A stretch of DNA of 64,000 bases from assembly GCF_003918875.1 (NCBI RefSeq), contig NW_025764904.1, positions 2,170,001 to 2,234,000 of the forward strand. Direction: 5' to 3'. Position 1 is the first letter of the stretch. Each line of letters starts with the position of its first letter. The notes beneath the pieces were generated by a model that did not search any database, was not told where the DNA came from, and saw nothing but the letters and a program-made list of their open reading frames with translations. The DNA is from Haliotis rubra (lineage: Eukaryota). Positions 1,957 to 33,734 of this stretch are shown here, piece by piece. The position numbers and the translations under genes are program-made.

Positions 1957-2826
1957 TTAATGGGTTAACTTCGATAAACAGGGGTTAACTTTGATTGTGG
2001 ACATCTTTTTAGGAGGTGGCATCTGTTTCTTCAGCCGCTGTTGACGTTGCTGGTTTCGCTTGTAGAAGTCATTGAAATTGGCAGCGATTATGGCAATGGG
2101 CATCGGAATGACAAGAATCCCGAGAAGAGAACAGGTCGACCCCACCAGGTAACCACACACCCCAGATGGAACATAGTCCCCATATCCTACCGTTGTCATA
2201 GTAACCACTGCCCACCAGATTGATATTGGTACGGTGTCGAAGTGATTGTTTTCAAATTCGCAGTAATATTGTATAGATCCAAACACTGTCGCGAATATCG
2301 TGAAGCAAATCCCCAACAGGATTAGTTCCGATTTGCTACGGTTGATGGCCAAAAATATCACCTTCAGTCCGGTAAATCGCTCCGAAAGTCGTAAAAAGCG
2401 GAAAAGCCGGAATATATAGAAACTTCGAAGTACAACATACAAAATGAACATGTCGTAGTTTTTGGCAACGAATCCATTTCTGAATCCCATCTCGGTGAGA
2501 TACACACTCCATCCACCGGAAATCGTGACGATGTCGACCCATGTGAGGAACCTCTTCATGAACTTCCGTTTCCGTGCGCATGACAGGAAGTGAAGGATGA
2601 ACTCCACGGTAAAGATACAGAGGCAAACAAGATCAATGGCGCTCAGGGAAGGGTACACCTTCGTAAACATCAACAGTTCGATCTTCAAATTATTTCCACT
2701 GAGGTTCTTTCGAACTGAGCTGTTGATTTCTGCACCCGAGATTGGCACACGGAATTCAAGCATTGTTTCCAGACAATAGTTGATAGCAGACACAGCCACG
2801 AGGACCATAAAAACAGTGTTCCAGAT
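1957..2826 (-). CDS. Kv channel gene 1, exon 2 (S1-S6 transmembrane domain); joins exon 1 at 13442-13909 to give ~445 aa Shaw/Kv3-like subunit
   Basis: Six TM segments, S2 FTVEF, S3 VDIV, S4 LRSFYIFRLFRFLRL, pore WWAVVTMTTVGYGD, S6 GILVIPMPIAII. Splice acceptor tattttcag|ATCTGG at 2826, phase 0; stop at 1957. Confidence 0.93.
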   Translation of the reverse strand: MWNTVFMVLVAVSAINYCLETMLEFRVPISGAEINSSVRKNLSGNNLKIELLMFTKVYPSLSAIDLVCLCIFTVEFILHFLSCARKRKFMKRFLTWVDIVTISGGWSVYLTEMGFRNGFVAKNYDMFILYVVLRSFYIFRLFRFLRLSERFTGLKVIFLAINRSKSELILLGICFTIFATVFGSIQYYCEFENNHFDTVPISIWWAVVTMTTVGYGDYVPSGVCGYLVGSTCSLLGILVIPMPIAIIAANFNDFYKRNQQRQQRLKKQMPPPKKMSTIKVNPCLSKLTH

Positions 2827-5081
2827 CTGAAAATATAATTTGGAAAATATGTTAGGCAAGTTAGCTTGTATATTGATTAAATCTCTTTGGACTTCCGTTG
2901 CCAGTCTAAGAAACGAGATAGTGCTGTAGCCATTGATCCATGATCCATGTATCCATATTCCAGCAATATTCCAGCTATATCAATATATGTTATCGAGTAT
3001 GGACCAGGCAATCCGGTGATAAACATCATGAGCATCTATCTACGAAACTGGAATACTATAGCATGCGTCAACCAAGCAAGCGAGCCTGACCACACAATCA
3101 CGTTAGTAGAAGCTATACCAGCTATTGATACTATGACTAACGACCAAGGAAAGTCTATTCATCTTTGTGGACCAGTATTTCTGTCAATGGGTTTGTTGGT
3201 GACACAGTTGTAATTTACTTGATTTCATTCATTGTGCGTGTCTGAACTGCAAAGTGGTTAGTGTACGGCACACTGGAAACTGGAAGAAGTCATCGTGAAG
3301 TTGCCAATGTGATCAATGTTTGACAGTCGGTGATCAGCAGACTATACCAACAAACCACAGCTGACAATGGACCCCGTTCAGGTCGTCCCTGGTCAGTGTC
3401 TCCGATTCACCTTTTACTTCCTTGATAGGTGCAATCGTGTCTAGCAGCCTCGAATTTTAAACTCATATGTCGCTATAACAGAACGAAACCAGCTCCATAT
3501 TTTGCACCAAAACAAACGGTCAAAGAACAGGATGTTGTATGTTGCAAGGCGTGTTGGTTTGTCTTTCATGACAACGCCCGTTCAGCAAGACACCGAGGCT
3601 ACAGCCCGATGGAACACGCTCGACCTCCAGATTTGTGCGACATACATGTATTTTACGTTATTTCCAGATATCCGTATTTCAGTGTATATCTGGAATATCT
3701 GCCAAAGAATAGGGCATACCTTCATGGCATAATAAAGTTGTTGTGGATTAACCACAGGCTAGCAAAAACATCAAGTATATACAAGATTAATTATCATTTT
3801 CATTGGATTCTCTGGTCTAGACTCGAATTGTTTACAAACAACATCGTAAGCTGTAATACTGCTGAAACAAATACGTAATCATGATATAGTCATAATTGTA
3901 CAATCGACTCGGCTTTTTGAAGAGATTTTTTATGGATGTGGAAAGGGTTTTCTAGTTTCTATTTTAAGAAGATTACGCTGGAACGACATATATTCTTTCT
4001 ACGAAGATTATAAAGAATATACGCTAACTAAAACAGTGTTTTATCAGGGTGACACCATCAAGGCCTCAGTAAATATTTTTAAATGCTTTATAGTAGACCT
4101 GTGGACGACATTTCCAAACATCTGCATCTCTTACAAAACGGATATTAGATGCAATTAAAAGTCTCAAGTTGTGCAATATATTCTCGTTGGTTTTAAGGCA
4201 AATAATTAACTTGACTTTCTATGTGTTTGTGACAAACGCCATCCGTACGATAGGATACGCTAATGTAATCATATCATATTTCGAATTGTACAACGGACAT
4301 AACAAAGATATCTAATATTATCATGATTGGTAAAGATTGGTCACAATGTTATTTACACACATCCATCTATAATAAGTTATTTTGATAACGAAGACATACT
4401 GATAGCCGTGTTACACGTACCACAGCAGGACGCAAATGTATGTGCTATCTGACAACAAAGGACATATCTTTGAAGATTTATTCGACGAATGAATCATTAT
4501 TCTTTTCAATGTTCATAAGACACTTCATCTTTGTCTTCAGTTCAAACAAATTATGGGCACAACGTGTGAAGCCTATATATGGTGTCCCCATCACTCAAAC
4601 AAATAATTGTTTTCCAGAAAAAAACATTTATTGAAACAAACGGGTATAGCTCACCGGACAATATAAACAAACATTCTACACAATATAATGTACGTGGAAT
4701 ACCAAACATTAGGTTCGATGTCAACTGAAAAAATACGAATCCAGACACAAGATACACTGAAACCTCGTCTACAGCTCGATGTTTACGTGAAACGAAATAA
4801 ATGCCACATCTAATGCATGCTTCTTTATCCGGAAATCCGGTTTCCGGAACCGGGCAGTGAATTTCAATTATCAACAGTGAGAATTACAAACCAATAGGCC
4901 CCACTTAACCCACAACGACCACGCTTGAACATGTTCATGTTGCAATCCATCACGCGGCGGTCAACATGAAAGGGTCGGGTAGCATGTCATCACAGTATTT
5001 GGCTACCTGTATACCTGTTAATTGGGCAGTCAGGTGAGATCTGACTTGAGGTTTGTGGTAAACATTAAAATGCTGTCTCCA

Positions 5082-5279
5082 CCACAGGTCCTAGTGACTT
5101 TGCGAGGATTAAAGATTTTATCAAATATATACAAAAATTTGAGATGACTCCCGACTCGAAATGCTTCACAATACAACACATTATGATGCATTGTATTGTG
5201 AAGCATTTCGAGTTGGGGGTCATCTCAAAAACAATATTTTTTAAATCTTTAATCCTCGCAAAGACACGAGGGTCTGTGG
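5082..5279. mobile_element. 198-bp palindromic MITE (CCACAG...CTGTGG) with 6-bp TSD
   Basis: ~37-bp TIRs plus internal inverted arms (TTTGAGATGACTCC...GGGGTCATCTCAAA); TCTCCA on both sides (5076-5081, 5280-5285). Confidence 0.85.
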
Positions 5280-5786
5280 TCTCCACTGTACATTGTACCG
5301 CAGTCATCATGTGAGCCAACCTGGTAGCCTTATGGTTAAGCCATTCGCTCGTCTCCGATTCGACCAGGGTTCGATTCCATGTGACATTTCTGGTGTCACC
5401 AACCGCGATTGTTCTGGAATTTTTGGAATTGTTGGAATATTGAACCTGCTCATTGAACCTGATGAACGAAATACAATTCAGCGACAGCTCGGTAAAAGAA
5501 ATGGATCCATTAGTATGAAAACACACATCCTAACATTTGACTTGTTGAGTAATGGCTTCACAAAACTAGTTCGGTCATAACATCGGGAAAACAACAATTG
5601 TGGAAGTTGGTTGACCTTCTCAGAAGATTTATCGTAACCGTTGCCTTTCTGACATGTTCACTATCAAACAGAAGCGACAAAACCCTGTCTACATCCATAA
5701 GAAATATCCTCATATGTACAATTGTTACCATATCATTTGTTTCAGCATGGAAGGTGGATAGTTCCTATGGTCAAGCAATGTATCTG

Positions 5787-6053
5787 CAGTGTAGGAAAGA
5801 TGTAGAAAATCTAGCCTGTCCACAGGACTGGCAGGTCAGATTTTTTACCAGTCCTGCCAAAATCTGGCCTGTCCTCCAAATATAAATAAAACACCTTCGG
5901 CAGTAAATATTCAAAAAGGTTATAATCATTATATATATGTCATTGGTTTGCTAAAATTGACCCGACATGAGGACGGACTAGATATTTTTTTAACCCGTCC
6001 TCCACAAAATTCACCCGTCTCGGACGTTGGGACGGGCTATCTTTTCTACACTG
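5787..6053. mobile_element. MITE, hAT-like termini (CAGTGTAGGAAAGAT...ATCTTTTCTACACTG)
   Basis: 15-bp near-perfect TIR, subterminal GTCC/GGAC repeats, direct repeat GTATCTG at 5780-5786 and 6054-6060. Confidence 0.75.
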
Positions 6054-6834
6054 GTATCTGGTAGAAATATTAGCTTTATATCATGAAGCAATTAAACTGG
6101 ACTTGAAAATCCTTTTAAATCGGTGACATACATTTTTCACACCAGCTTTTTCAGTCAGACCCAAATGGACAAATACATACAAAGCCAAACCTTNNNNNNN
6201 NNNNNNNNNNNNNNNNNNNNNNNNNNNNNNNNNNNNNNNNNNNNNNNNNNNNNNNNNNNNNNNNNNNNNNNNNNNNNNNNNNNNNNNNNNNNNNNNNNNN
6301 NNNNNNNNNNNNNNNNNNNNNNNNNNNNNNNNNNNNNNNNNNNNNNNNNNNNNNNNNNNNNNNNNNNNNNNNNNNNNNNNNNNNNNNNNNNNNNNNNNNN
6401 NNNNNNNNNNNNNNNNNNNNNNNNNNNNNNNNNNNNNNNNNNNTGTCGTACAATATCTCATACAATACCAATTTACTGTGCCACTATTTGTACACGACAA
6501 CACGACGGTTTACTCGCCAAAACTATAAGAAAAAAATCGACATCAAGAAAGCCAAGTTGCCATTCGAGTGAAGCTTCCGGTTCCTCGAATAGATTCTGTT
6601 TTTACTTAGTGCATGCCAAAGGGACGAACTTTATAGGATATACATTAAGCCGTATACTATCCGAGATTACCTATCCGGCTTGTCTAGTCAGGTCTCGATC
6701 ATCTATCTGGTTTTGTCAAGACAGCCCTCGATTATTTATTAGTTTGTCTAGCCATGTCTCGAGTATTAGACCGCCGTCATACAACTGAAATACTGAACGT
6801 GGCGTTAAGCCACAACTAACATTATATGGGATAT

Positions 6835-7500
6835 TAGGCGCTCTCATGGGCTCTGATAAGGCGCCCCTCTGTGCTGATCGGTTTCTTTTTTTCCACTGTG
6901 AGTGGCCATATTATACCACATTGAAGGCTACTGCGTAAATACTTCGAGTTATCCGAGCCTTGACACAACTTTCACTGATGGCCAAGTAAGGAACACACAG
7001 AGACCCAGCTTTTACTTCGAGACAACGAGACAACCTTAGTTTAACACATCACAGTTCGACACAGCCGTACACTGATGACCAAGTAAGGAACACGCACAGA
7101 CCCAGCTTTTACTTCAAGACAACCGTAGGTTCGACACATCACAGTTCGACACAGCGGTATTTGACTTAAGTATTTAACTCCAGGTACATCGATTATCTGC
7201 AATGATCGTTCAAACATATTCATACAGCCTATTCCCTTCTACTGGTTTACACAGTTGAACCAGAAACAAAAGAGTGAATTTGTTTTATATTAAAATCAAT
7301 GCATGCAGATTCAGAGTGTAAAGAATATTCTCCACAAGACTGAAAAACAAGATGGGGGTCTTTCAACAGACCATTCTCCGTCCTTGTCAGTATACTCCGG
7401 CAGCACCAGCGTTTGATGTCTACAATTTACAACTAACAGCTCATGAGATTCAATCTTGTATGCACAGTCTACGGATATTTCAAAGACGTCATCTAAATTA
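6835..7500 (+). pseudogene. Degenerate Penelope-like retroelement RT fragment (duplicated at ~10315-10975)
   Basis: Translatable relics ALMGSDKAPLCAD.FLF (RT motif B'), NSRYIDYL (YxDD region), PAAPAFDVYNLQL; many frameshifts and an internal ~100-bp duplication. Confidence 0.55.
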
Positions 7501-8039
7501 GTTACCTACAAAGACGTCTTGCAATGCGTAGTCTTCTGCATCTCCAGAGAGGGAAACAATAGACAGACATTTCAATTGACTACGAACGAACAAAATCAAT
7601 ATTTGGAATATAATTTTTCATTGTTCCAAGTGGGTCAAATCCATTCGTATCACGATTAATCATATATCAGTATTCACAAAACCCATTGGATTTCCTGTGA
7701 GTACAATAAATCAATGTTGTCACACATTTCCGTTGTGGAGATGAATTGTATGAGAAAATTGGTATTTTTCTTGGTTTACATAACGTCAAACAACATCACT
7801 TTCATATGAAAACAACATTATGTGAACTGTCTAGACACGGAACATGGCATTGCTTGGATATCAAGTAATCTAAAATACAGATCCATGCTTTTGTCTGAAA
7901 AGGAAATTTATGGCAATTATGACATTTTCTACGTACATACACTCGTGGAATGCCTGAGGAAAAGTCCATTCCAGGTTCAGATTAAACAGGTGAAATGCTG
8001 GACTTAATCATGATACAATTTGGGGATAAAACCTTGAGA

Positions 8040-8585
8040 CAAGAAACAGACATCCCCATTGGCACCAGCTGTGCTCCCCTCCTGGCGGATCTGTATTTCT
8101 ATGCATATGAATCAAACTTTCTGCTCTGTTTTGCAAAGTAAAAACAAGGTAATTTAGCCAAGAAGTTAAACATAAGTTTCGGGTATATCGACGATCTAAT
8201 ATTGTGCAAAACCCATCCAATAGCCAATTCCCTTTCATTAATTTATTTTTCACAAATTAGGGACACAGGTGTTTCATCAACTGTTTCATAGTTATCTATG
8301 CATAAGATTTGGAGTGACAAAAATCTCCCAACATCAAATTGAGGAGACAAATGAGACCGCCTCAGCAGTTTCATATTTAGATATATACATCAAGATTGAC
8401 AAACAAAAACTCACCACAATGCCAAACAGGGATGATTTCTGCTTGTCAATTGTCAACTTTCCATTCATGTCGAAGAACATTCCAACTGTTCCAGCCGTTT
8501 GTGTTTATTTTTCACAACGTTTGAGGTACAATCGAGCATGCTCTTTTTACAAAGATTTCAAAGAGCGCCCAACGATTCTTGCTTA
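8040..8585 (+). pseudogene. Penelope-like retroelement RT fragment (duplicated at ~11515-12060)
   Basis: IPIGTSCAPLLADLYFYAYE, F.YIDDL, SYLDIYI, RDDFCLSIVNFPFMSKNIP..PAVCVYFSQRLRYNRAC: characteristic PLE RT and thumb motifs, broken by frameshifts. Confidence 0.8.
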
Positions 8586-8895
8586 TCATACAATCGAGAT
8601 TGTATAATGGACTTTCTTTATGATACAGTCACATGACACATGCTTATCATAGAGTCGATATCGTATAATGGACTTTGTTTACGATACAGTCACATGACAC
8701 ATGCTTATCATAGAGTCGAGATCGTACCATGGACTTTGTTTACGATACAGTCACATGACACATGCTTATCATAGAGTCGAGATAGTATAATGGACTTTCT
8801 TTATGATACAGTCAGATGACACATGCTTATCATAGAGTCGAGATCGTATAATGGACTTTCTTTATGATATAGTCAGATGACACATGCTTATCATA
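8580..8895. repeat. 61-bp tandem repeat, ~5 copies (duplicated at ~12052-12367)
   Basis: TGCTTATCAT recurs at 8580, 8641, 8702, 8763, 8824 and 8885. Confidence 0.95.
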
Positions 8896-11800
8896 CGAAG
8901 AAATCTGCATTTAGCAGAGATTTTGTATAATAATGGAAAGATGTTGTCCGTTTTGTCCGTAGTACCAAGAAATGCTCCTAGCTTTAAAACTTTAATTATG
9001 GTGTCAAGTTGCAGCTATAATTTCGCGCAGATTCTCCAACATGGTCGTGTTTATTTACTGCCGTTTCATGCTTTCAAGATCGTGTTTTGACTCTTATTTC
9101 ATTTAAACGTTATTTATGTACAATGTATATTATATATATTGCCATTGCACGCTTCCTCAACCTTTACCTTAAGTCATGAAAACATGAATCATAAAAAAAC
9201 ATATGACACATGTTTTTGTACGGCTGTACATTCCAAGGTACAGAGTGAAGTACAGTGTAAGTGGGTATAAGGGCGAGTTTATATGTATGTTCTTATTTAA
9301 ATTTGTTGGAATTTTCTGTACAGCTATGAATTACTGTGGTTAAGTGCATTTTTTTCAAAATGATCCAGGGACGTTCGTATGAACTGTCTATTATACTATA
9401 AGTCTCCAGACGAAACCATGGTAAGTGGGTTGATCGTTCGTATAATGTGTCTCATACAAACGGTTTTTACCCTGATTATGGTTCTTGGTTTGATATTATC
9501 ATAATAGTTATGATTGCGCCATCAGAGTACCATGACATGTCATGAGAGACTGACCATCTCATCCTTAAGTCGACTCTTACGGACTGTATACGAGAGGCCA
9601 CACCCCTGAAGATCAGGGTTGGAATTGGTCTTCAGTAACCCATGCTTGACGTAAGATGCGACTGACAAGATCGGTGGGTCAGGCTCGCTGACTTAGTTGA
9701 CACATGTCACCCCAATTGCGTAGATCGAAGCTCATGATCATTGGAGTGTCTGGTCAAGACTCGATTATTTNNNNNNNNNNNNNNNNNNNNNNNNNNNNNN
9801 NNNNNNNNNNNNNNNNNNNNNNNNNNNNNNNNNNNNNNNNNNNNNNNNNNNNNNNNNNNNNNNNNNNNNNNNNNNNNNNNNNNNNNNNNNNNNNNNNNNN
9901 NNNNNNNNNNNNNNNNNNNNNNNNGTCGTACAATATCTCATACAATACCAATTTACTGTGCCACTATTTGTACACGACAACACGACGGTTTACTCGCCAA
10001 AACTATAAGAAAAATCGACATCAAGAAAGTTGAAGTTGCCATTCGAGTGAAGCTTCCGGTTCCTCGAATAGATTCTATTTTTTACTTAGTGCATGCCAAA
10101 GGGACGAACTTTATAGGATATACATTAAGCCGTATACTATCCGAGATTACCTATCCGGCTTGTCTAGTCAGGTCTCGATCATCTATCTGGTTTTGTCAAG
10201 ACAGCCCTCGATTATTTATTAGTTTGTCTAGCCATGTCTCGAGTATTAGACCGCCGTCATACAACTGAAATACTGAACGTGGCGTTAAGCACAACTAACA
10301 TTATATGGGATATTAGGCGCTCTCATGGGCTCTGATAAGGCGCCCTCTGTGCTGATCGGTTTCTTTTTTCCACTGTGGTGGCCATATTATACCACATTGA
10401 AGGCTACTGCGTAAATACTTCGAGTTATCCGAGCCTTGACACAACTTTCACTGATGGCCAAGTAAGGAACACACAGAGACCCAGCTTTTACTTCGAGACA
10501 ACGAGACAACCTTAGTTTAACACATCACAGTTCGACACAGCCGTACACTGATGACCAAGTAAGGAACACGCACAGACCCAGCTTTTACTTCAAGACAACC
10601 GTAGGTTCGACACATCACAGTTCGACACAGCGGTATTTGACTTAAGTATTTAACTCCAGGTACATCGATTATCTGCAATGATCGTTCAAACATATTCATA
10701 CAGCCTATTCCCTTCTACTGGTTTACACAGTTGAACCAGAAACAAAGAGTGAATTTGTTTTATATTAAAATCAATGCATGCAGATTCAGAGTGTAAAGAA
10801 TATTCTCCACAAGACTGAAAAACAAGATGGGGTCTTTCAACAGACCATTCTCCGTCCTTGTCAGTATACTCCGGCAGCACCAGCGTTTGATGTCTACAAT
10901 TTACAACTAACAGCTCATGAGATTCAATCTTGTATGCACAGTCTACGGATATTTCAAAGACGTCATCTAAATTAGTTACCTACAAAGACGTCTTGCAATG
11001 CGTAGTCTTCTGCATCTCCAGAGAGGGAAACAATAGACAGACATTTCAATTGACTACGAACGAACAAAATCAATATTTGGAATATAATTTTTCATTGTTC
11101 CAAGTGGGTCAAATCCATTCGTATCACGATTAATCATATATCAGTATTCACAAAACCCATTGGATTTCCTGTGAGTACAATAAATCAATGTTGTCACACA
11201 TTTCCGTTGTGGAGATGAATTGTATGAGAAAATTGGTATTTTTCTTGGTTTACATAACGTCAAACAACATCACTTTCATATGAAAACAACATTATGTGAA
11301 CTGTCTAGACACGGAACATGGCATTGCTTGGATATCAAGTAATCTAAAATACAGATCCATGCTTTTGTCTGAAAAGGAAATTTATGGCAATTATGACATT
11401 TTCTACGTACATACACTCGTGGAATGCCTGAGGAAAAGTCCATTCCAGGTTCAGATTAAACAGGTGAAATGCTGGACTTAATCATGATACAATTTGGGGA
11501 TAAAACCTTGAGACAAGAAACAGACATCCCCATTGGCACCAGCTGTGCTCCCCTCCTGGCGGATCTGTATTTCTATGCATATGAATCAAACTTTCTGCTC
11601 TGTTTTGCAAAGTAAAAACAAGGTAATTTAGCCAAGAAGTTAAACATAAGTTTCGGGTATATCGACGATCTAATATTGTGCAAAACCCATCCAATAGCCA
11701 ATTCCCTTTCATTAATTTATTTTTCACAAATTAGGGACACAGGTGTTTCATCAACTGTTTCATAGTTATCTATGCATAAGATTTGGGTGACAAAATCTCC

Positions 11801-13078
11801 CAACATCAAATTGAGGAGACAAATGAGACCGCCTCAGCAGTTTCATATTTAGATATATACATCAAGATTGACAAACAAAAACTCACCACAATGCCAAACA
11901 GGGATGATTTCTGCTTGTCAATTGTCAACTTTCCATTCATGTCGAAGAACATTCCAACTGTTCCAGCCGTTTGTGTTTATTTTTCACAACGTTTGAGGTA
12001 CAATCGAGCATGCTCTCTTTTACAAAGATTTCAAAGAGCGCCTAACGATTCTTGCTTATCATACAATCGAGATTGTATAATGGACTTTCTTTATGATACA
12101 GTCACATGACACATGCTTATCATAGAGTCGATATCGTATAATGGACTTTGTTTACGATACAGTCACATGACACATGCTTATCATAGAGTCGAGATCGTAC
12201 CATGGACTTTGTTTACGATACAGTCACATGACACATGCTTATCATAGAGTCGAGATAGTATAATGGACTTTCTTTATGATACAGTCAGATGACACATGCT
12301 TATCATAGAGTCGAGATCGTATAATGGACTTTCTTTATGATATAGTCAGATGACACATGCTTATCATACGAAGAAATCTGCATTTAGCAGAGATTTTGTA
12401 TAATAATGGAAAGATGTTGTCCGTTTTTGTCCGTAGTACCAAGAAATGCTCCTAGCTTTAAAACTTTAATTATGGTGTCAAGTTGCAGCTATAATTTCGC
12501 GCAGATTCTCCAACATGGTCGTGTTTATTTACTGCCGTTTCATGCTTTCAAGATCGTGTTTTTGACTCTTATTTCATTTAAACGTTATTTATGTACAATG
12601 TATATTATATATATTGCCATTGCACGCTTCCTCAACCTTTACCTTAAGTCATGAAAACATGAATCATAAAAAAACATATGACACATGTTTTTGTACGGCT
12701 GTACATTCCAAGGTACAGAGTGAAGTACAGTGTAAGTGGGTATAAGGGCGAGTTTATATGTATGTTCTTATTTAAATTTGTTGGAATTTTCTGTACAGCT
12801 ATGAATTACTGTGGTTAAGTGCATTTTTTTCAAAATGATCCAGGGACGTTCGTATGAACTGTCTATTATACTATAAGTCTCCAGACGAAACCATGGTAAG
12901 TGGGTTGATCGTTCGTATAATGTGTCTCATACAAACGGTTTTTACCCTGATTATGGTTCTTGGTTTGATATTATCATAATAGTTATGATTGCGCCATCAG
13001 AGTACCATGACATGTCATGAGAGACTGACCATCTCATCCTTAAGTCGACTCTTACGGACTGTATACGAGAGAGGCCAC

Positions 13079-19117: not shown

Positions 19118-19142
19118 ATTATTGACTTTGTGGTTTCTGTTT

Positions 19143-21936: not shown

Positions 21937-23427
21937 GGGTGGGCAAATAGCCCTCGGACCAAAAAAACCCTAGGCTAAATGCCCCCATGACAAAAAGCCC
22001 TTGCACAATTTCACCCATAGGATAAAACACCCTTTGTGTTGATTTTGGGTTGACAGGTGATAACACGATGTTTTCTAAGCAATTCCTCCCACTGTTGACA
22101 GTTGTTACAAGTAAGTAACATATGTAAACCCATATGCACCCAGGATCCTCAGTCACGATATTATTTTAACAATGGAATGAAGTCTGCTAAATGTTGTTTC
22201 AGAGAATTGGCTAAAATTGGTCACTTGCTCCTTACTTATCACACTGCATCATGGAGGTTCTTAGAACAATAAAGGTGGTGTCAAGCTAGCGCTAGATGGG
22301 TATATGTATACCAAGAAAAGTTATACTAGATGGGTATATGTATACCAAGAAAAGTTATACTAGATGGGCATATGTATACCAAGAAAAGTTATACTAGATG
22401 GGTATATGTATACCAAGAAAAGTTATACTAGATGGGTATATGTATACCAAGAAAAGTTATACTAGATGGGTATATGTATACCAAGAAAAGTTATACTAGA
22501 TGGGTATATGTATACCAAGAAAAGTTATACTAGATGGGTATATGTATACCAAGAAAAGTTATACTAGATGGGTATATGTATACCAAGAAAAGTTAACTAG
22601 ATGGGTATATGTATACCAAGAAAAGTTATCATACTAGATGGGTATATGTATACCAAGAAAAGTTATACTAGATGGGCATATGTATACCAAGAAAAGTTAT
22701 ACTAGATGGGTATATGTATACCAAGAAAAGTTATACTAGATGGGTATATGTATACCAAGAAAAGTTATACTAGATGGGCATATGTATGCCAAGAAAAGTT
22801 ATACTAGATGGGTATATGTATACCAAGAAAAGTTATACTAGATGGGTATATGTATACCAAGAAAAGTTATACTAGATGGGTATATGTATACGAAGAAAGT
22901 TATACTAGATGGGTATATGTATACCAAGAAAAGTTATACTAGATGGGTACATGTATACCAAGAAAAGTTATTCTAGATGGGTATATGTAAACCAAGAAAA
23001 GTTCAAATATTAGTCGTACTGGGTGGCAATGTACAAATAGATCAGCCTTGGATTGTCCCAGTATTCCACACACCAACCTGAATATAGAAGACCCGATCGT
23101 GACAAAGGAACGCAATCATCCTTCTGACACTACCAAAGTCAGTATCACCACGTTCAGGAATAAACTGTATGATAGTGTTCCTGTAGCTATTTATGTGCCA
23201 TTATATATGCGTCATGTTGCTGATGTTAAATCTTATATACTATTTTAAATAATATATTCATGTGAGAATAAATTAATGTGCTGCAAAAGGATTTGTTGGT
23301 ATTCTATTACATCTTTTCATTGAGGGCCTTTTTTTCCTAACCATTGAGGGCTTTTTGTCATGGGGGCGTTTAGCTTAGGGACGTTTTGCCTGGGGGCTTT
23401 TTTCTGAGTGGGCCTATTATCCTACCC
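21937..23427 (+). mobile_element. Non-autonomous Mutator/MULE-like element with a FLYWCH remnant
   Basis: Imperfect TIRs (CCTAGGCTAAATGCCCCCATGACAAAAAGCCCT versus AGGGCTTTTTGTCATGGGGGCGTTTAGCTTAGG); internal KGGVKLALDGYMYTKKS...WQCTNRSALDC...RNHP. No TSD found. Confidence 0.7.
22293..23003. repeat. 34-bp minisatellite, ~21 near-identical copies (TAGATGGGTATATGTATACCAAGAAAAGTTATAC)
   Basis: Period 34 (22293, 22327, ...); head-to-tail units with no spacers. Confidence 0.97.
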
Positions 23428-23897
23428 TCCACACAATTCCCTATTTTGACTTATACCATACGTTCCCGAATTATTTCAGGTGAACAATTGACTAGTCTAT
23501 GCATATGTTTATGACACGTGGCACAGGTAGAGCAGGATACGCTCACCTTTTCGCGAACACCTGGTATCATCACTATGTCATAGTGATTCATAAATACATG
23601 CTCTGTCATCGTATCGTATGGTGACAATCACTGGATTATCTGGTACGGACATGATTTGTTTACAAACAACATCGTACAGTCCTAATACTGCTGAAACAAG
23701 TAAAATATATACTAATGATATAGTCACAATTGTAAATCGACTCTGCTTTTAACAGAGATTTCTTATGGATGTGGAAAGGGTTTGTCAGGGGCGCTGTCTA
23801 GTGGTTCAAATGACTTTACCCCCACCTGTCCGCTCTGCCCGACCTCCCCAACATACAGCCAGACTGGTAGAAACCAATCCCCCTCGAAGGGCCTTAG

Positions 23898-24112
23898 ACC
23901 GTGAAGATCTGTGTTAGAATTGGTCTTCAGCCACCCATACTTGTCGTAAGAGGCGACTAACGGGATCGGGTGGTCAGGCTCTCTGACTTGGTTGACACAT
24001 GTCATCGTATCCCAAATGCGTAGATTGATGCTCATGTTGTTGATCACAGGATTTGCTGACTCGATTTTTTACAAACCGCAGCCATATAGCAGGAATATTG
24101 CTGTGTGCGGCG
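23898..24112 (+). mobile_element. Family B retroposon
   Basis: Consensus match from ACCGTGAAGATC to GCGGCGT. Confidence 0.8.
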
Positions 24113-24484
24113 TCGAAGGGTCTCGAGCAAGGAACTTTGAGACGGGTGTGAGGTATGGAGTTGAGTCTAATCCATGGTTGTTATTCACACCACAGAAGCC
24201 GCCATATAGCTGGAATATTGCTGACTACGGCGTAAAACTAAACTCACTCACACCACAGAACAACCTTATCAAAAAAAGCTCTTGACATTTTACGGACGCT
24301 TCATTATTGTTCTCACAAACATTTATCATGAGTGAGATTAGATCAGTGACTTTAGATTTATGTCGCTTTCAGCAACATTTTCGGAGACACCACTTTGTAT
24401 CTATGTATACATTCGAACCTGTGTCTCCGGCGTGACGAGTGAACACTTTAACCACTAGGCTACCCCACGGCCTCTAACATATAA

Positions 24485-24706
24485 TATTGATCTTCAGTAA
24501 CCCATGCTTGTCGTAAGAGGCGACTAACGGGATCGGGTGGTCAGGCTCGCTGACTTGGTTGACACATGTCATCAGTTTCCAATTGCGCAGATCGATGCTC
24601 ATGCTGTTGATCACTGGATTGTCTGGTCCGGACTCGATTATTTACAGACCGCCGCCAATTATCTGGAATATTGTTGAGTACGGCGTAAAACTAAACTCAC
24701 TCACTC
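24485..24706 (+). mobile_element. Family B retroposon, 5'-truncated, with a family A-type (ACTC)n tail
   Basis: Consensus match; ends GGCGTAAAACTAAACTCACTCACTC. Confidence 0.8.
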
Positions 24707-25673
24707 AAGCAAACATACTTCTGTTGGTACACGGCCACACATTTGAATATTGCAAATTGTTTTGTGCAAAATTCCCTAATTAAACGTATTTACCTTTAGT
24801 CTCATGGCAATACAAATAAATTATGTTTACATTACAGCTTCTTATGGATGTGGAAAAGGTTGTGTCGCTTTTCATTATAGCATTGATGTGGATAAACACG
24901 TCAGGACAATAGGTTTAATCCATTTCTGTTTCTTCTTATTCCTAGCGTATGTTCTGAAAACATCGTGCACTGACTGAACTAACACAGAAAGACTTTCAGT
25001 AAGTTCTTTTTATTTGTTATTTTTGTAATCAACAAATCGGCATGGATAATAAAATACAAAATGAGAATTACTGAATATACAAAAATGTACGGCCACCTAT
25101 ATCTGTGCTCCTCCGAGTAATATATCGATCCAGTGACCCAGTACACAAGTGTATTTACACATCACTTAAGGCGGTCGTTTTCATTCGACTATCCAAAGTC
25201 GCTTTAAGTGTAATATCCGCCTAAACAAAAATGCGGTATGTGTTTAATACTAGACTAAGAACCATGGAGGCTAGCATTAGTCAACAGAAAAGCCATTATA
25301 ATTCAAGAACTTCTTTATATGTTTCTCACGATGTTTCTGGGCTAGTTCTTGTCCCTCAGGTGGATGTGTTGGGTTAAACGTCGTGAGAAATAAATAAAGA
25401 AATCGTTATCCATACGATTTGTCTTGTATGACTACACCAGCTTCTAAATGCCATTTCGCCATTATAGTGGTTTCTACTTAGATATCCTACATATTTGCAG
25501 TAAGAATGGAATCACATTATGAAATTCCGTTTATAAGAATTCTTTGCAACATTTAAGGTATATCGGAACGGAAGAATGTATTTAATATTACATATTTTGT
25601 CCGGATGCAGAGTCAGAACAGATCCACAATGCTTTTGTTATGAGGTTACTAAGGCAGTCCACAGACATATAAC

Positions 25674-25915
25674 ACCCGTGGGGATCCGGGTTAGAATTGA
25701 TCTTCAGTAACCCATGCTTGTAAGAGGCGACTAACGGCATCGGATAATCAGGCTCGCTGACTTGGTTGACACATGTCACCGTATCCCATCTGCGTAGATC
25801 AATGTTCATAATGTTGATCCCTGGATTGTCTGGACCAGACCTGATCATTTACAGACCGCCGCCATATAGCTGGAATATTGCTGAGAGCGGCATAAAACTA
25901 AACTCACTCACTCAC
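25674..25915 (+). mobile_element. Family B retroposon, full length
   Basis: ACCCGTGGGGATCCGGGTTAGAATTGATCTTCAGTAACCC head through (ACTC)n tail. Confidence 0.87.
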
Positions 25916-27924
25916 TAAAGACATATTGCTAGTAGTATGCAAAGAAATCTCCGAGAGTTTTGGACCTTTGTGAACATGATCAATTCTACTGAGAACAAAA
26001 CGTGTTGCTGTGATCCTTCTAACGACTTTGGTACAACCAAACGATAATGCCTCAAAAAGGTCTTAGTGTGGAGATGTTCCTTAAACAGAGAGCACTGTTC
26101 CAACTGCCGCATCCGTCACACACACATGCACAGGCTAGTAAATTGCAAGGGTCACTATGAACCGATTTGTCGTATCTGATCTTCTGATGTTCCTTCTAAT
26201 ATTTTCAAAGGCATCCTGAAATCTGTTTTTCGTTTCGTCTGCAAATGTGTGGACATCCACATTCTCATCAGGTTTTGGTTACAAGAGATGTGGCAGGTTG
26301 ATTTCCATGACAACATTCAAACGCGTGTGCTTTGCACATTTGTAACTAAGCATACACTCTACGCTATGTAAAACGAAACTGCTCTTACAAGAGGGCACCA
26401 AAGACGTGTAAAGCTTTTATTGCACCTGAGCACCACCCGCTGTACCAAATTACAGCTGTCAAGATCATAGAAAGCTTTCAAAGCGTTTTATAGTAGACAT
26501 CTTCCTTAAACAGATAGCCCTGATTCAGCTCCATCCGAACACATGCAATGGTAAGTAAATTGTTCACTTGTAAATACCCGAAATTATATTAATAATACCA
26601 GGTCAAATTAGGGAATTGTATCGGAATTGTCAAGGAAGCGTCGAATTGGGAATTGGTCTTAATAACTTAAAGAAGCTTAAAGAAAACTTAAAGGTCATAG
26701 ACGTATAGGCTACCTGACCTACATGATTTAATATTTTTTTTCTCACATTTTGACAATAGCCCTAAAGTGTTGTATCGTATTCAAGCAAGACTACAAACAT
26801 GCACATGTCATATAAACGTGTACCACAAATTGCCTGTCTAAGAAGTGCAATTTACAGTATTTTACACCAAACNNNNNNNNNNNNNNNNNNNNNNNNNNNN
26901 NNNNNNNNNNNNNNNNNNNNNNNNNNNNNNNNNNNNNNNNNNNNNNNNNNNNNNNNNNNNNNNNNNNNNNNNNNNNNNNNNNNNNNNNNNNNNNNNNNNN
27001 NNNNNNNNNNNNNNNNNNNNNNNNNNNNCAGCTAGCCCCGCCTCCGTTGATTTATAAGTCAAGAGCACAATAGTTCAACAGCACGCTATGAATCTTGAGA
27101 TAACAATACGACATAATGTCTGAAAATGCTTTAATTAAGTTTTTCTTTCAGCGTTCCGTTCATTTTAATCTACTGCCACAAAGACATTGTGATATTAAGT
27201 CTTTTCTCGTTGTACAGACTTGTATCCTTAAATCGAGTCCGCTGGTTCGAATCCTACATTTTCCCTGATTCTGAAACGTGGTTTGCGAACATGACATCCG
27301 ACAAGGACTTTGGGCTACTGACAACGGGTCAACCGCTCACTTAACCACTCACTCAACGAATCACTCACCCACCCTGTCACACAACTAATCACTCACTCAA
27401 CCAAACACTCTATCAACCATTCAACCATTCACGCAACCACTCATTCAACCATTCCTCAACCACTCACAAATTCAACCACTAAATCACTCCCCCATTTAAC
27501 CACTAACTCAACCACTCACTCAACATACCCTAAATGTCGAGCATGCATGAACGCAATGTAAACCCAATTTCCGCACACCAGCTCTTAAATAGTCGCTACC
27601 AGTTCAGCCACTGCCTCTCCAAAGTGATAGCCGATCGCGTGTACGGTTCGTAAGCTTGAAATCAGACACTGTTGTATACACGTGACTCACACACTTACTT
27701 TATAAAGCAACAAATGGCCTAGCTTCGACCTCGACCCACTGTTAGAAATAATTCAAAGCAGCGTTAATCCCATCTCACTCGCTACAATATTCCTTTGACG
27801 ACAAGACTACCATAGATGGTAGAACAAACACACCGAAATTGTAATCACTTTACTTGATGTGTCTAATTGATGATGTATCGATTTGCAGCCTCGGCCGGGA
27901 ACCTGTATCAATAACTTGATTGCA

Positions 27925-29301
27925 TACTGACGAAAAATTTAACTGTGTATGACATAAAAGTGCATAAAATACAAGTTTCTTGAATATAATTTTTATTTAT
28001 AAAAATAACCCAACATAAATGTGCAGCAAAGCACTTTGCTTAAAATTTGATGCCACGTGGACTTTGTGCACAGTGAACTTACCCACTTTCTGTAGGCTTT
28101 TTGACACCTGAAGTTCACACACCTGATATTGAAAAATTAACAACGGGTGATTATTCTCGAAGCTCCGAATGTTGTGGAAAAAGCGTTAATTTCAACCTAA
28201 ACTGCGCGTACTTCATGCCACGGCTTACAGAAATGCAGCGTCTCCGGCCTTGGGTATGCCGGAGACTGGAAAGACCCAAAATGAAAAAATGAAGTGGCCA
28301 AACATGTTGGTGTCCATCGAAACACGATCTCATCTCTATGGAGACGTGTTCAACATAATGGGAACACGAGAGATTTGCCTCGGACCGGCCGTCCACACTG
28401 CCACTTTGACTGATCGGACCATTCCTGGCTTACGTCCAATCAGTTCCAGGACTGGACGGAACCGACTGAGGGAGCACAACATCCAGCCCCGACGGCCTGC
28501 AATACGTCAAAATTTGCTCCAATGTCATGCACGTCTTGCCTGGTGCAGACAGCATCTACGGTACAGGAGACGAGAATGGGATGGTGTTTTGTTCACTGAG
28601 AGGTCGAGATTGACAGGGCAAGGGTGTACAGACGGCAAGGTAACCGCTATGCTGACGCGTGCATTGTTCAACGCCGACAGTTTGGCTGAGAAAACGTTAT
28701 GGTATGGGGTGCCATCACATCTCATGATCGGACACTATCTAACAGGTCTGCGATACAGGGATGAGATCACTGGGTCCCATGTCCAGCCGTTCATTCAAGG
28801 TCAGAGACTTGACACTTCAGCAAGATAATGCCCGTCCACATGCATGTCGCTTATGTTGTGACAGATTTCCTGAGACAGCAGAACATTCCAGTACACCTCT
28901 TGCCAGCGGTTTCCTAGGACCTGTCCCCTATCGAATACACTTGGGATGAAATGGAGCGACGTTTACGTCAAACCCAGAATCAGCAATTGACGTTAGCTGA
29001 ATTGGGACAAGCATTGTTTCACACATGGAGCAACATTCCCCAAGCTTTCTTCAATCGCTACGCGACGTCTATTCGTCGTCGTTGTCAAGTTTGCATCAAC
29101 GCCAAAGTGGACACAAACGATACTGAATTTGTGAACTGACATTTCACACCGCATCTTTTCAAGAACATGTGTCACGATGCCGAGTGTCAAATCCTACAGG
29201 TTCAGTTCGATATTATCCTGTCGACAATTAAACATTGATTAAGGAAAATACGACAAATCATGTTATAATCAAATAATGTACAGTTACTTATTTCAGTAGT
29301 A
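27925..29301 (+). mobile_element. Degenerate Tc1/mariner transposon
   Basis: MPRLTEMQR start (28216); frameshifted relics RLAWCRQH...WDGVLFTE, LQQDNARPH, DLSPIEYTWDEMERRLR, SIRRRCQVCINAK; imperfect TIRs TACTGACGAAAAATTTAACTGT / ACAGTTACTTATTTCAGTAGTA. Confidence 0.85.
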
Positions 29302-29454
29302 TGCATATGGATAAACCCTACGTATACTCTCGACACATATAATAAAACGAATGATTTAAGAAAACGCTCGTTTGTCTCCATTTACGATACTCCGGTTCTA
29401 CTTCTAATCACAATTAAAATTCACATCATGGATAAACAGCGCGTGTGTCCAAAT

Positions 29455-29613
29455 TAGTGAGTTTGGTTTTACACCGAGTTTAACAATATTCCAGCAATAT
29501 CGCGGCAGGGAACACAGAAATGGGCTTCACACATTAGATTCATGTGGGGAATCGAACCCGGGTCTTTAGCGTGACGAGCAAACTCTTCAACCACTAGGCG
29601 ACCCAACCACCCC
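29455..29613 (-). mobile_element. tRNA-Asp-derived SINE (family A)
   Basis: Reverse-complement match to the family A consensus. Confidence 0.8.
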
Positions 29614-30459
29614 ACGTGTGTGGGCCTCACAGACACTTACAATCAATAATGCAGTTGAAGTAAGAAGACCATTTGAATGAGACATTCTCTTAAAGACAAA
29701 ATGGCGAATTTAAGACAGACTGCTGAATTTTCACACCTACTGGAGCAGTACCGTCAAACGGATGGTGTTTGATTGAGACCGGGTCCTAAAAATGGCACCA
29801 ACACTCGTCTTGTTACATTAATTGGACCAGTCTGGTCCTGTTTTGGGTATTGTGAATTGGCATTTAACTGGCCTGTGATAACTTCATGAAATTGTGGGTC
29901 CAGTCGTTGTTCCATTCGCTAAAATTATTTTCGGGAATTCTGATGATGACAATGCCAGACCATCACCGTTTATCCCACCCGTGAAGATCCGTGTTAGAAT
30001 AGGTCTTCAGCAACCCATGCTTGTCGCAATATTAACACGGCAAAACTAGACAAAGTTTTACCAATATTTATGACAGTATATATTATTGAAAACTGGACAT
30101 GTACAGATTAACTGACCTCTGTTCCCAATCTTCAAGCTGCCAAGGGTCACATTGATAACGAACATCCGAAACCAGTATCTGGTCCGGGTCTGCAGATAGC
30201 AATAAACTAATCAAATTCACTGTGAACTTCACCCATCAACACCGATGTCTTCAATACGTTTATGAAAATTATCATATAATCCGGTCAAGATAGAGTAGCT
30301 TAAGTGCGCAGTTGGCACCGTATCGTCAGTCGAGTTAGGCAATAGGATTTAGATATAGCAACTGAAGTTCACAACAACAACTTTATCGTCAGTGTATCAG
30401 TAAATGGGATTATCTATGATAACTGGAATAGGTATAAAACAGGGACAACACACAGTCAC

Positions 30460-31069
30460 AAATCGTTCAGTGACTGCTGTGTAATAAACTCCTTGTTTAT
30501 TTACTCAGGTAAGAAACTTTACTTTCTTCTACTTTGACATATATACCATTGTTATTCTAGGTTAACTTTAATCTATTGTAAATACCTTAACTATAAGTTA
30601 CAACCCTGGCAGTACCTTCAGGTTTATGTGGAACGAGGCATCCCTTAGTATGTGTCTCATATCTTCTGTATTGCAGTTTAGGATTGTGTATTTCATACTG
30701 ATTGACACTACACTGTTTTGTGACTATTATAGAATGTATAGAGTGTGTCGGATATTTTAACTATTGTATTACGTTGTGCATGAATACTATATGCTGTTTG
30801 GGACCGTTACAGAATGTAGATTGTATGAAACCCCACTGGGGTGATGTGTAGAGTTCTGAACTATTGTTGTGTACATTGGAATATGTATCGCGATTAATGT
30901 AGTATGTGTCGTGTATAACGAATCTACATGTGATGTTTATGTACTTTGATATCTGATTGCATTCTGATCATGTTCTAATAATTAATTGTAAACTATGCTA
31001 TTATTGACTGATTATGTAAAATCGTTCAGTGACTGCTGTGTAATAAACTCCTTGTTTATTTACTCAGGT
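30460..31069. repeat. Pair of perfect 51-bp direct repeats (30460-30510, 31019-31069) ~510 bp apart
   Basis: AAATCGTTCAGTGACTGCTGTGTAATAAACTCCTTGTTTATTTACTCAGGT occurs twice. Confidence 0.9.
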
Positions 31070-31893
31070 GTTGTGTTGTGTGTGGGTTGGTATGGGCAGA
31101 CCTCTTGCCAAGCGAGCTGATTCCCCAAAACTCGCGTTTTAAACTCGCGTTTTAATAGCCATGTAGCTGGAATATTGCAAACACCGATCTCCGATGAGGC
31201 TTCATACGGACATTTGAGAGCCTGGTTCAGTCCCTTGGCATGTCCCAATAGAGCATCTATGCGATGTTCTCGGGTGTATGCCAGAGACCTAGAGACCACC
31301 AGGGGTAGTTGGCTGAGTAAACGAGGGGATACCACAGGCACATTAATTGACAGTATACCATGAAAATTAGGCGTATGTATTGCTCACCATCGTGACACAC
31401 CAAATATTGATCTCCACGCCAGAAATGAATTACACAGACATTTATCGTCAATACTCGATCCCTAACATTTCATCAGTTCCTTTATTTCTGTTGGTAACAC
31501 ATTACTGATTAATCCAAAGTATAATTTAGAAGTCTTTCGTGATCATTAACGCCTGTGGTTTGTTTTGTTGATTTCATCAATATGTTTCATTGGTCGTCAT
31601 GACAACATGACATGTCGATTGCATTTTGATGGACAGCGATCACTTAGTTATATATGACAAGCAATATCAACGAAGCGCATTTACAAATACCAATAACTCC
31701 CGATCCGATTATCTAACCGTATCACTACCAATTCTACCAAACAGTCGATCAACGAAATGTGATTACTCTAAAAGCCTCCAAATAAACGCCGACATGACGA
31801 CTATTTGCATAACAAGTCTCTACATTTACACTAGGGGAAGGCATTGTCTAACATATCAGACTGGACACAATCTCCGTGATCTGTAGTTTGTCC

Positions 31894-32451
31894 ATGCGAC
31901 TTCATGGCATAGTTGGAGCTTTACATCCCACTCTGCGTTTAGCAGAGATTTCGTATGGACGTAGAAAGGGTTCTGCAGTTTCTATTCCAATGATGAATGT
32001 CATAACCATCAATGTTGGAGGAACGTTGTTCCAAACATCGTTGGCAACTCTAAACCAGGTCCCAGACACGTTACTGTCTAATGAAAGTCTCCTCTCTCAG
32101 AACTTCCAGCCCGATAAGCAAATCTACTTCTTCGACAGAGATCCCCAGATGTTTCATTACATCCTCAACTACTACAGAACGGGAGAGCTTCATCTTCCTC
32201 CAGGAGCTTGCAGCTCGTCCATCAAGAAGGAGCTTCATTTCTGGTGCATCCCTGAGACACATGTGTCCGAGTGCTGCTGGAAGGTGCTTTACAAGGTCCA
32301 GAACGACATGGCGGTCCTCGCCAAGCTTAATCAAGTGTTTCATGATGAAGTGTCTGACTTCTGTATGTCCAAGAAAATGGCGGGTCAGTCAAGAGTCCGA
32401 CATGCTGTCTGGATGTTCCTGGAGTATCCGGGATCATCTTTGCCAGCCAAA
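31894..32451 (+). CDS. Kv channel gene 2, exon 1 (T1/BTB domain); start is ATG 31894 or ATG 31990
   Basis: ITINVGGTLF, YFFDRDP, ILNYYRTGELH, HX5CX20CC (HLPPGAC...VSECC); donor GCCAAA|gtaaga at 32451/32452, phase 0. Confidence 0.9.
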
Positions 32452-32551
32452 GTAAGAAATTATGTTTGTTTCATATTAAATGTAACATATGTTATATTTT
32501 GCATTACATTTTCTCAGTAAAGTACAGATTCTAGCAATTTTGTTGGTTTGA

Positions 32552-32644
32552 GGCCCATCCTGGATTCGAAGCCACACCCTCAGAGTCAGGCACCTAATTG
32601 CCAGCACACATAGTAAGCGCCTAACCCGCTCAGCCACCGCGGCT
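32552..32644 (-). mobile_element. tRNA-like (long variable arm, Ser/Leu-type) SINE head or tRNA pseudogene in the gene 2 intron
   Basis: A box TGGCTGAGCGG and B box GCTTCGAATCC on the minus strand; no clean cloverleaf. Confidence 0.55.
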
Positions 32645-32837
32645 CTTGCTGAGGAAGTGTAATCCCAAATTATAAAAGTAGGTCCAACTTTAGCCCCAGG
32701 TGAAAATTGACAAAAACAGAAACTTCCATTGCTTACAGAAGTCCAGAAAAAAACAGAACTGTTTAGCAATTTAATTTCGTAAAACAAATGTTAAAGACTA
32801 TGACATAATTCAAACCGTGGGTCATGCTCTGTTTCAG

Positions 32838-33734
32838 CTGTGGGAAAAGTTCTTCTTCACGCTGATATGCACCTCGACCCTGGTGTTCATGTTTGAAACC
32901 GTGAAAAGCTTCAGAGAAGTAGATCCCGACATAAAGACCAAATGCAACATCACTAAGATTTTAAACGGAACAGTACTTTTTCGGGGATGGAAAAATGAGC
33001 TGGCTTTTTTCACCACTAGACCGTTCCTTTTTTTGTCTCACATCGATCTAGTTTTGGCGGTGATATTTACAATCGAATTTGCAGTCCGATTCATCACATG
33101 TCCGCGAAAGTGCAACTTTCTTAGGAGTTTACTCAATATGATTGACCTCCTGTTTTTGTTATGCAAATGGCCCTCTTATTACATGGAAGGATATGCGTGT
33201 GTGCTAAACAGCACCAATATGTTGATGTATATCGTTCTGAAGGGACTAACCTTTTCGAGAATATTCCGACTATTCCGTATCGGAAGGTCATGTCAAGGGT
33301 TCAAGGTCATGTTAGTGGCGCTCAAGTCCAGCTCGGGTGAACTCTGTCTTATGGTTGGGAGTTTCATCTGTGTGACTCTTATGTTCGCTGTTTTGGCGTT
33401 TCTTAGTGAACTGCGTGAGGCTACCTTCTCAAATGTTCTGTCGGCGTGGTGGTGGGCGGTGGTTACGATGACGACGGTAGGCTATGGCGATATCTACCCG
33501 GTCAGTGCTACTGGTCAAGTGATAGCGTCGATGTGTGCTGTGACAGGGATGGTTATTCTCACCCTACCTATTGCTATTATTGGTACAAATTTCGCGGAGT
33601 ACTATAGTGTCAACCGAGAAAGGGAGTTATATGGAGGAAAGCAAACTAAGTGTGAAATGATGATGGCAAATGAGAAGAAAGGAGCTCTTTTAACAAGGAA
33701 TAAAATACATCACACTAAAGTGACCAAGTTTTGA
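32838..33734 (+). CDS. Kv channel gene 2, exon 2 (S1-S6); spliced product ~452-484 aa, Shaw/Kv3-like
   Basis: Acceptor ctgtttcag|CTGTGG; FTIEF, NMIDL, S4 LKGLTFSRIFRLFRIGR, WWWAVVTMTTVGYGD, S6 GMVILTLPIAII. The 386-bp intron is at the same position as in gene 1. Confidence 0.93.
   Translation: MWEKFFFTLICTSTLVFMFETVKSFREVDPDIKTKCNITKILNGTVLFRGWKNELAFFTTRPFLFLSHIDLVLAVIFTIEFAVRFITCPRKCNFLRSLLNMIDLLFLLCKWPSYYMEGYACVLNSTNMLMYIVLKGLTFSRIFRLFRIGRSCQGFKVMLVALKSSSGELCLMVGSFICVTLMFAVLAFLSELREATFSNVLSAWWWAVVTMTTVGYGDIYPVSATGQVIASMCAVTGMVILTLPIAIIGTNFAEYYSVNRERELYGGKQTKCEMMMANEKKGALLTRNKIHHTKVTKF

Follow-up and report, generated by a model that had tools for sequence, protein, structure and literature searches.

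Does a voltage-gated potassium (Kv) channel subunit that carries an alanine in place of the second proline of its S6 gate still conduct by itself, or does it act by modifying the channels built by its relatives? This question is raised by two genes, here called gene 1 and gene 2, in a 64,000-nucleotide stretch of the genome of the blacklip abalone, Haliotis rubra (RefSeq assembly GCF_003918875.1, contig NW_025764904.1, positions 2,170,001 to 2,234,000), which we refer to in its whole length as the window. Both genes had been annotated already: the spliced translation of gene 1 is identical to a RefSeq "Shaw-like" protein of H. rubra (P0001, 445 residues) and that of gene 2 to an "egl-36-like" protein of the same species (P0121, 484 residues). 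The expansion of Shaw genes in lophotrochozoans has likewise been published. What we add is the definition of a mollusc-wide clade of channel proteins with a P-x-A gate, its placement among Kv channels, a measurement of its selection regime, and a predicted function. With a probability of roughly 0.45, we favor the view that both genes encode regulatory ("silent") subunits, which would enter tetramers with a pore-competent partner of the Shaw family and alter their gating.

The two genes lie head to head, and each consists of two exons separated by a single phase-0 intron, located between the T1-S1 linker and S1. All splice sites of both genes fit the canonical consensus. The parts of the locus are as follows (a slash marks the exon boundary).

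13442..13909, minus strand: gene 1 exon 1, encoding the N-terminus, T1 (BTB_2) and the T1-S1 linker (156 residues; open reading frame and donor AAG/GTAAGC).
2827..13441, minus strand: gene 1 intron of 10.6 kb, with gaps of N at 6194-6443 and 9771-9924 inside it.
1957..2826, minus strand: gene 1 exon 2, encoding S1 to S6 and a short C-terminal tail (289 residues and stop; acceptor TTTTCAG/).
13910..31992, no strand: spacer of 18 kb between the divergent genes, with a broken long terminal repeat (LTR) retrotransposon and a gap of N at 26873-27028.
31993..32451, plus strand: gene 2 exon 1, encoding T1 (BTB_2) and the linker (153 residues counted from 31993; RefSeq start at 31894; donor AAA/GTAAGA).
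32838..33734, plus strand: gene 2 exon 2, encoding S1 to S6 and a short C-terminal tail (298 residues and stop; acceptor GTTTCAG/).

The gates that the initial annotation had read from the DNA, VIPMPIAII and ILTLPIAII, are indeed present in gene 1 and gene 2, respectively. The S6 motif of gene 1 is VIPMPIAIIAANF, with the gate P-I-A-I-I-A encoded at 2083-2100, and that of gene 2 is ILTLPIAIIGTNF, with the gate P-I-A-I-I-G encoded at 33567-33584. Neither conforms to the canonical gate, P-V-P-V-I-V; in the numbering of Pisupati et al., both are atypical at the third position, where Pro is replaced by Ala, and at the sixth position, the hydrophobic seal, where Val is replaced by Ala or Gly. HMMER aligned the P-I-A of gene 1, residue by residue and without gaps, to the P-I-P in the P-I-P-I-I-V gate of Kv2.1, and thus it is the second proline that alanine has replaced in gene 1. 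An extra proline two residues upstream in gene 1 and in its H. rufescens orthologue creates the sequence P-M-P-I-A, so the PxP of gene 1 is displaced and not simply lost.

Both proteins match the Pfam families BTB_2 (E values of 2.4e-22 for gene 1 and 4.3e-26 for gene 2) and Ion_trans (1e-31 and 5e-32). As had been claimed, the filter TTVGYGD (2176-2196 in gene 1 and 33471-33491 in gene 2) is intact in both, and so is the zinc motif H-x5-C-x20-CC of T1 (13604-13690 and 32191-32277), a motif common to Shab, Shaw and Shal and absent in Shaker. The S4 segment of gene 1 (2377-2430) has R1, R3, R4 and R5, positions 2 and 6 being occupied by Tyr and Glu, respectively, and that of gene 2 (33237-33287) has K1, R3, R4, R5 and R6, the second charge being missing; S4 segments without the second charge are common in Shaw channels. 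The charge-transfer residues of S2 (Phe and Glu) and S3 (Asp), namely F228, E231 and D254, are conserved in both genes, as is the mid-S6 glycine. S6 is followed by NFNDFYKRNQ in gene 1 and by NFAEYYSVNR in gene 2, and the YYSHAQA motif of canonical Shaw is present in neither.

How widely is this gate distributed? We built one tree under LG+G4 (120 rows) and one under the LG+C20 mixture model (60 rows), both rooted on Kv1 and both composed without Kv4 (Shal) sequences. In these trees proteins with a P-x-A gate form a clade with support of 97, and the window genes fall into separate sub-branches of it. The named members are all molluscs (Haliotis, Patella, Nucella, Littorina, Mytilus, Mizuhopecten, Argopecten, Pecten, Ylistrum and Pinctada), so that the clade is common to gastropods and bivalves, and at least five such genes are found in H. 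rubra. The molluscan expansion that had been proposed is therefore borne out, but the two genes are not the pair of lineage-specific paralogues that they had been taken for: their proteins are only 34% identical, and both are members of this larger gastropod-bivalve clade.

Nor can the gate be called degenerate, as it had been. Of 33 cluster representatives of the clade, 32 have Pro at the first gate position. At the third, 31 have Ala and two have Gly; at the sixth, Ala occurs 21 times, Ser 10 times and Thr and Gly once each, and Val does not occur. The gate of the clade, P-[I/V]-A-x-x-[A/S/G] (in shorter form P-[IV]-A-x-x-[AS]), reads as a conserved variant and not as the product of random decay. 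The proteins of the clade are also compact, with a median length of 451 residues and about 36 residues after S6, as compared with 500-670 residues for canonical Shaw. Between two and eight consecutive Kv cores are present in five predicted proteins of 770-1750 residues (P0239, P0242, P0277, P0304 and P0327) from the exhaustive search described below, P0242 having two P-x-A gates; these look like tandem gene arrays that were fused by gene prediction in other species.

The nearest outgroups of the clade keep the proline at the third position and already have Ala at the sixth, as in the P-I-P-I-I-A of the annelid Owenia (P0261 and P0270) and the P-V-P-I-I-A of the scallop Ylistrum (P0263). This suggests that the gate changed stepwise, the seal residue being altered first and the hinge proline second, the latter in molluscs. 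A protein of the brachiopod Lingula (P0274) with a full P-I-A-I-I-A lies just outside the P-x-A clade, at a position that the trees do not resolve. Taken with the gates of the sister groups, the brachiopod sequence hints at stepwise or repeated change of the gate.

From which Kv subfamily did the clade arise? The initial annotation had assigned both genes to Shaw/Kv3, and the trees agree. The Kv2/Kv5 clade is separate in both from a Shaw superclade that holds the two genes and has support of 94-96 (96 in the mixture tree by the Shimodaira-Hasegawa-like approximate likelihood ratio test, SH-aLRT). At the base of the superclade are sequences with the canonical P-V-P-V-I-V gate from Trichoplax, arthropods, a nematode, a sea star, Lingula and Lymnaea, together with Hydra-type sequences. 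Within it lies a lophotrochozoan clade of gate variants (T-V-P-I-V-V, S-V-P-V-I-V, A-I-P-I-I-S, P-I-P-I-I-A and P-V-P-I-I-A) that encloses the P-x-A clade, whose stepwise nesting inside lophotrochozoan Shaw-like clades is supported at 93-99. A union of the P-x-A clade with the Kv2/Kv5 clade was rejected by the approximately unbiased (AU) test (p = 0.004), and the gate change is therefore independent of that in the silent Kv (KvS) subunits of vertebrates, as had been suggested. A published phylogeny of four subfamilies counted 13 genes for Shaw and one each for Shal and Shab in the limpet Lottia, and nine Shaw genes in Capitella form part of the same lophotrochozoan expansion (Jegla et al. 2012, PMC3519636). 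The abalone genes are members of this expansion, and a Lottia protein with the gate S-M-P-I-A-I-I-A-A stands in the sequence table of that paper. Canonical P-V-P Shaw has been retained in molluscs as well, an example being P0321 of Lymnaea.

Profile searches gave a concordant picture. An exhaustive search of 1.84 billion cluster representatives with a profile of the clade returned 3239 proteins at an E value of 1e-30 or better. The best 150 of these 3239 matches consisted of P-x-A proteins, followed by Shaw-type proteins (360-370 bits) and then by Kv2-type proteins (at most 339 bits), and no Kv1- or Kv4-type protein was among these 150. When compared at full length with the PDB, the profile scored 338 bits with Kv3.1, 328 with Kv2.1, 313 with Kv4.2 and 305 with Kv1.2. 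Its T1 alone scored 111 bits with Aplysia Shaw and 97 with Kv4.2, and the best PDB match of the T1 of gene 1 was that of Aplysia Shaw (3KVT, 82.5 bits). The sequences thus assign both genes to the Shaw (Kv3) lineage, with their exclusion from Shal being indirect in that Kv4 was not in the trees.

It could be argued that the clade derives from Shal (Kv4), or constitutes a fifth subfamily with an assembly group of its own, and that its long branches have pulled it into Shaw. Such an origin would be compatible with trees that contain no Kv4 sequence and with pairwise scores of single domains against solved structures, which are ambiguous on subfamily: the T1 of gene 2 scores 84.2 bits with Kv4.2 and 83.6 with Aplysia Shaw, and the transmembrane core of gene 1, taken alone, scores higher with Kv2.1 and Kv1.3 than with Kv3.1. 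However, it is at odds with the preference of the clade profile for Kv3.1 over Kv2.1 and Kv4.2 at full length and for Aplysia Shaw in T1, with the Shaw-type proteins that come directly after the clade in the profile search, with the well-supported nesting inside lophotrochozoan Shaw-like clades, and with the published Lottia gene counts and same-gate Lottia protein. We regard it as unlikely. The trees lack Kv4 because a word search on the T1 of gene 2 alone yielded 3 proteins, with no Shal sequence among them, and because a Shal-type post-S6 motif occurred in 0 of the 413 proteins retrieved.

We also asked whether the genes are maintained by selection. Gene 1 is 83% identical to its H. rufescens orthologue, with 0.10 nonsynonymous substitutions per site (dN), 0.35-0.46 synonymous substitutions per site (dS) and a dN/dS of 0.22-0.30; gene 2 is 88% identical to its H. 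asinina orthologue, with a dN/dS of 0.21-0.24. T1 is the most constrained part of both proteins (dN/dS of 0.10 in gene 1 and 0.08 in gene 2), and S1 to S3 is the loosest. No disruption of the reading frames or splice sites is seen in H. rubra, H. rufescens or H. asinina, nor in one more genomic contig from an abalone. Both genes are real, under purifying selection and selectively maintained. Gene 1 evolves quickly, and other H. rubra paralogues of the P-x-A type are 88-99% identical between the same species, more than the window genes are.

These results bear on whether the genes are decaying or nonfunctional copies, that is, pseudogenes in the making, for which the initial annotation had expected a dN/dS near 1. 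In keeping with decay, dN/dS is above the level usual for Kv channels, and 11 of the 21 coding differences in an incomplete list for another individual change the amino acid. In addition, two run searches yielded no RNA run that holds the exons of either gene. The only runs that hold them (X1-X3) are genomic, because their contigs read through the intron of gene 2, and the Logan contig encoding P0003 is genomic too. The intact reading frames and splice sites in several abalone, the retention of every key motif, and a dN/dS of 0.2-0.3 overall and about 0.1 in T1 nevertheless speak for maintained genes. We have therefore rejected the pseudogene reading, which we consider very improbable.

What, then, do the two subunits do? 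By analogy with known subunits, a regulatory role is plausible and the most likely of the readings. Of the 43 regulatory subunits verified by experiment in mouse and Nematostella, which have no consistent signature in T1, 42 have atypical S6 gates (PMC6279357), and both abalone genes display this hallmark at the third and sixth positions. The second proline is missing from all vertebrate silent KvS subunits; the PxP of S6 acts as a hinge in gating, and Kv1, Kv2 and Shaker channels tolerate alanine poorly in place of its prolines (PMC3440756). On these points the literature premises of the initial annotation prove sound. Regulatory subunits are reported to evolve fast (PMC3519636), and the same trend is seen in the window genes, which have long branches and diverge faster between abalone species than other paralogues do. 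Finally, there is precedent for a silent Kv3 subunit in the Kv3.5 of vertebrates (bioRxiv 10.1101/2025.09.21.677649). If the abalone proteins are of this kind, they would co-assemble through their Shaw-type T1 with a pore-competent Shaw-family subunit, canonical P-V-P-V-I-V Shaw still being kept in molluscs. In the resulting tetramer, voltage dependence and kinetics would be shifted by an S6 made less flexible through the change of the third gate residue from Pro to Ala and by a seal made smaller through the change of the sixth from Val to Ala or Gly; either subunit by itself would give little or no current. By extension, the P-x-A proteins of molluscs as a whole might be obligate-heteromeric modifiers of Shaw channels, a family to which each abalone genome would contribute at least five genes and in which gene 1 would have acquired its displaced P-M-P later. 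We put this wider proposal forward, as a whole, as one with somewhat less than an even chance of being right.

Several observations weigh against a regulatory role, and most of them would sit well with a different one, in which the proteins form homotetrameric Kv channels without a partner and the conserved P-x-A-x-x-A gate is an adaptation that confers unusual gating, such as that of a low-threshold, slowly gating or partly open-at-rest K+ conductance. The gate is strongly conserved across gastropods and bivalves and not variable (as the counts for Pro and Ala given above attest), all remaining functional elements are intact, and selection is purifying. The replacement residue is Ala, unlike the polar Ser/Thr and aromatic pattern of Kv6-9, and KCNQ channels function with P-A-G (PMC3440756). 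Noncanonical gates such as T-V-P-I-V-V also occur in many other Shaw-like proteins of lophotrochozoans, some of them long-tailed and bearing the Shaw motif YYSHAQ, so the PxP rule may be looser in this lineage. The displaced P-M-P of gene 1 could, for its part, restore a hinge. The published gate rule was drawn from mouse and sea anemone only (PMC6279357), and the failure of the run searches to return RNA counts against a regulatory role as well. On the other side, channels sufficient in themselves are hard to reconcile with the poor tolerance of Kv1, Kv2 and Shaker for alanine at the PxP prolines and with the tracking of the regulatory phenotype by atypical gates in the verified cases; also, the abalone proteins resemble regulatory subunits in being compact and short-tailed and in diverging rapidly. 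We judge self-sufficient channels with altered gating to be nearly as likely as regulatory subunits. Nothing that we computed separates this possibility from that of regulatory subunits. In favor of self-sufficient channels, a noncanonical Aplysia Kv, aKv5.1, is reported to be functional by itself (Zhao et al. 1994), although a literature search turned up no text on it.

Comparison with known systems helps to place the proposed regulatory subunits. Like the vertebrate KvS subunits (Kv5.1, Kv6, Kv8 and Kv9), the abalone proteins have T1 and six transmembrane segments, an intact filter and voltage sensor, a PxP without its second proline, and a changed sixth position. In contrast, KvS subunits arose from Kv2 and the abalone genes from Shaw, in agreement with the AU test; KvS subunits mostly have Ser/Thr at the third position and an aromatic residue at the sixth, whereas the abalone genes have Ala and Ala/Gly; and the silent phenotype is proven for KvS and predicted for the abalone subunits. 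The Kv3 regulatory cluster of Nematostella and the vertebrate Kv3.5 resemble the predicted abalone subunits in being regulatory within Shaw/Kv3 and compact (PMC6279357; bioRxiv 10.1101/2025.09.21.677649), but they had separate origins in cnidarians and bony vertebrates. A fish protein from Sardina pilchardus (P0308, "KCNC1-like", 452 residues), which is probably the recently named silent Kv3.5, differs from the abalone proteins in having the gate P-I-P-V-L-V followed by V-N-K-F and in falling at the base of the Shaw clade and not in the mollusc clade.

With canonical Shaw/Kv3 channels (Drosophila Shaw, Aplysia Shaw and Kv3.1) the abalone genes share the closest T1 (3KVT), the zinc motif, a reduced S4 charge and an exon boundary between T1 and S1, and they nest phylogenetically within Shaw. 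The canonical members differ from them in having the P-V-P-V-I-V gate, a post-S6 motif YYSHAQA-K-LPKK, a longer T1-S1 linker with the motif I/V-A-R-x-F-G, and long C-terminal tails.

To our knowledge, silent Kv subunits have been demonstrated in vertebrates (Kv5/6/8/9 and Kv3.5) and cnidarians and nowhere else; ctenophores and choanoflagellates have candidates, and the literature that we searched describes no silent Kv subunit in molluscs or other protostomes. If the P-x-A clade is silent, it would represent another independent origin of silent subunits, inside the Shaw subfamily, and its members would, to judge from the literature searched, be the first such subunits known from protostomes. 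It would then explain much of a lophotrochozoan Shaw expansion that has been uncharacterised since 2012, and its sister groups would offer a natural series on how change in the S6 gate restricts stoichiometry. If, instead, the proteins are self-sufficient, they would be natural examples of Kv channels whose gating does without the second hinge proline, and the rule that an atypical gate means a regulatory subunit would have to be qualified. Either outcome would be a modest step that fits a known pattern.

Several features of the assembly touch on the gene models. The gaps of N in the locus lie in the gene 1 intron or in intergenic DNA, and none overlaps coding sequence. An exon hidden in the gaps was considered and ruled out: the gene 1 protein and its orthologue from H. 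rufescens, the locus of which has no N, are colinear over the exon junction, and therefore no hidden exon is required. The gene 1 intron contains a 3.3-kb direct repeat with copies at 6445-9770 and 9925-13247 that are 99.4% identical, each following one of the gaps. Without the gap at 9771-9924 and the copy at 9925-13247, the intron would measure about 7.1 kb, and since the H. rufescens intron is 7.09 kb long, the duplicate is probably a scaffolding artefact. Gene 2 probably starts at 31993, giving a product of 451 residues, because DNA contigs from another individual have G at 31894 and C at 31991, with the consequent loss of the ATGs at 31894 and 31990, and because 31993 corresponds to the start of the H. 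asinina orthologue (MN-I-TINVGG). The head-to-head arrangement is kept in H. asinina, where the gene 2 orthologue has, some 10 kb upstream and on the opposite strand, a gene for a 437-residue protein with BTB_2 and Ion_trans. The RefSeq model of this orthologue (L002, 10001-12055), at 356 residues, omits about 90 residues of exon 2; as the genomic exon 2 is a fully open frame, the short model is an annotation artefact and not a deletion.

Repetitive elements are found around both genes. The LTR-retrotransposon-like element between them (15940-19898, minus strand) encodes gag, protease-reverse transcriptase and integrase over at least five open reading frames in different frames. Sequences of very high copy number occupy 32440-32720, in the gene 2 intron, and 33850-34130, just 3' of gene 2, where the summed contig depth is 1e5-5e6 as against about 50 in the flanks; these are probably short interspersed nuclear element (SINE)-like elements. 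Unrelated to the channel genes are an open reading frame of 296 residues for a Tc1/mariner-type transposase (42817-43707), a related fragment (28250-28828) and a fragment of a Mutator-like element (MULE)-like transposase (41024-41506). Finally, low-complexity tandem repeats at 34347-35087 and 46500-47500 give rise to long spurious open reading frames in several frames, the latter stretch being interrupted by gaps of N at 46815-46954 and 47132-47290.

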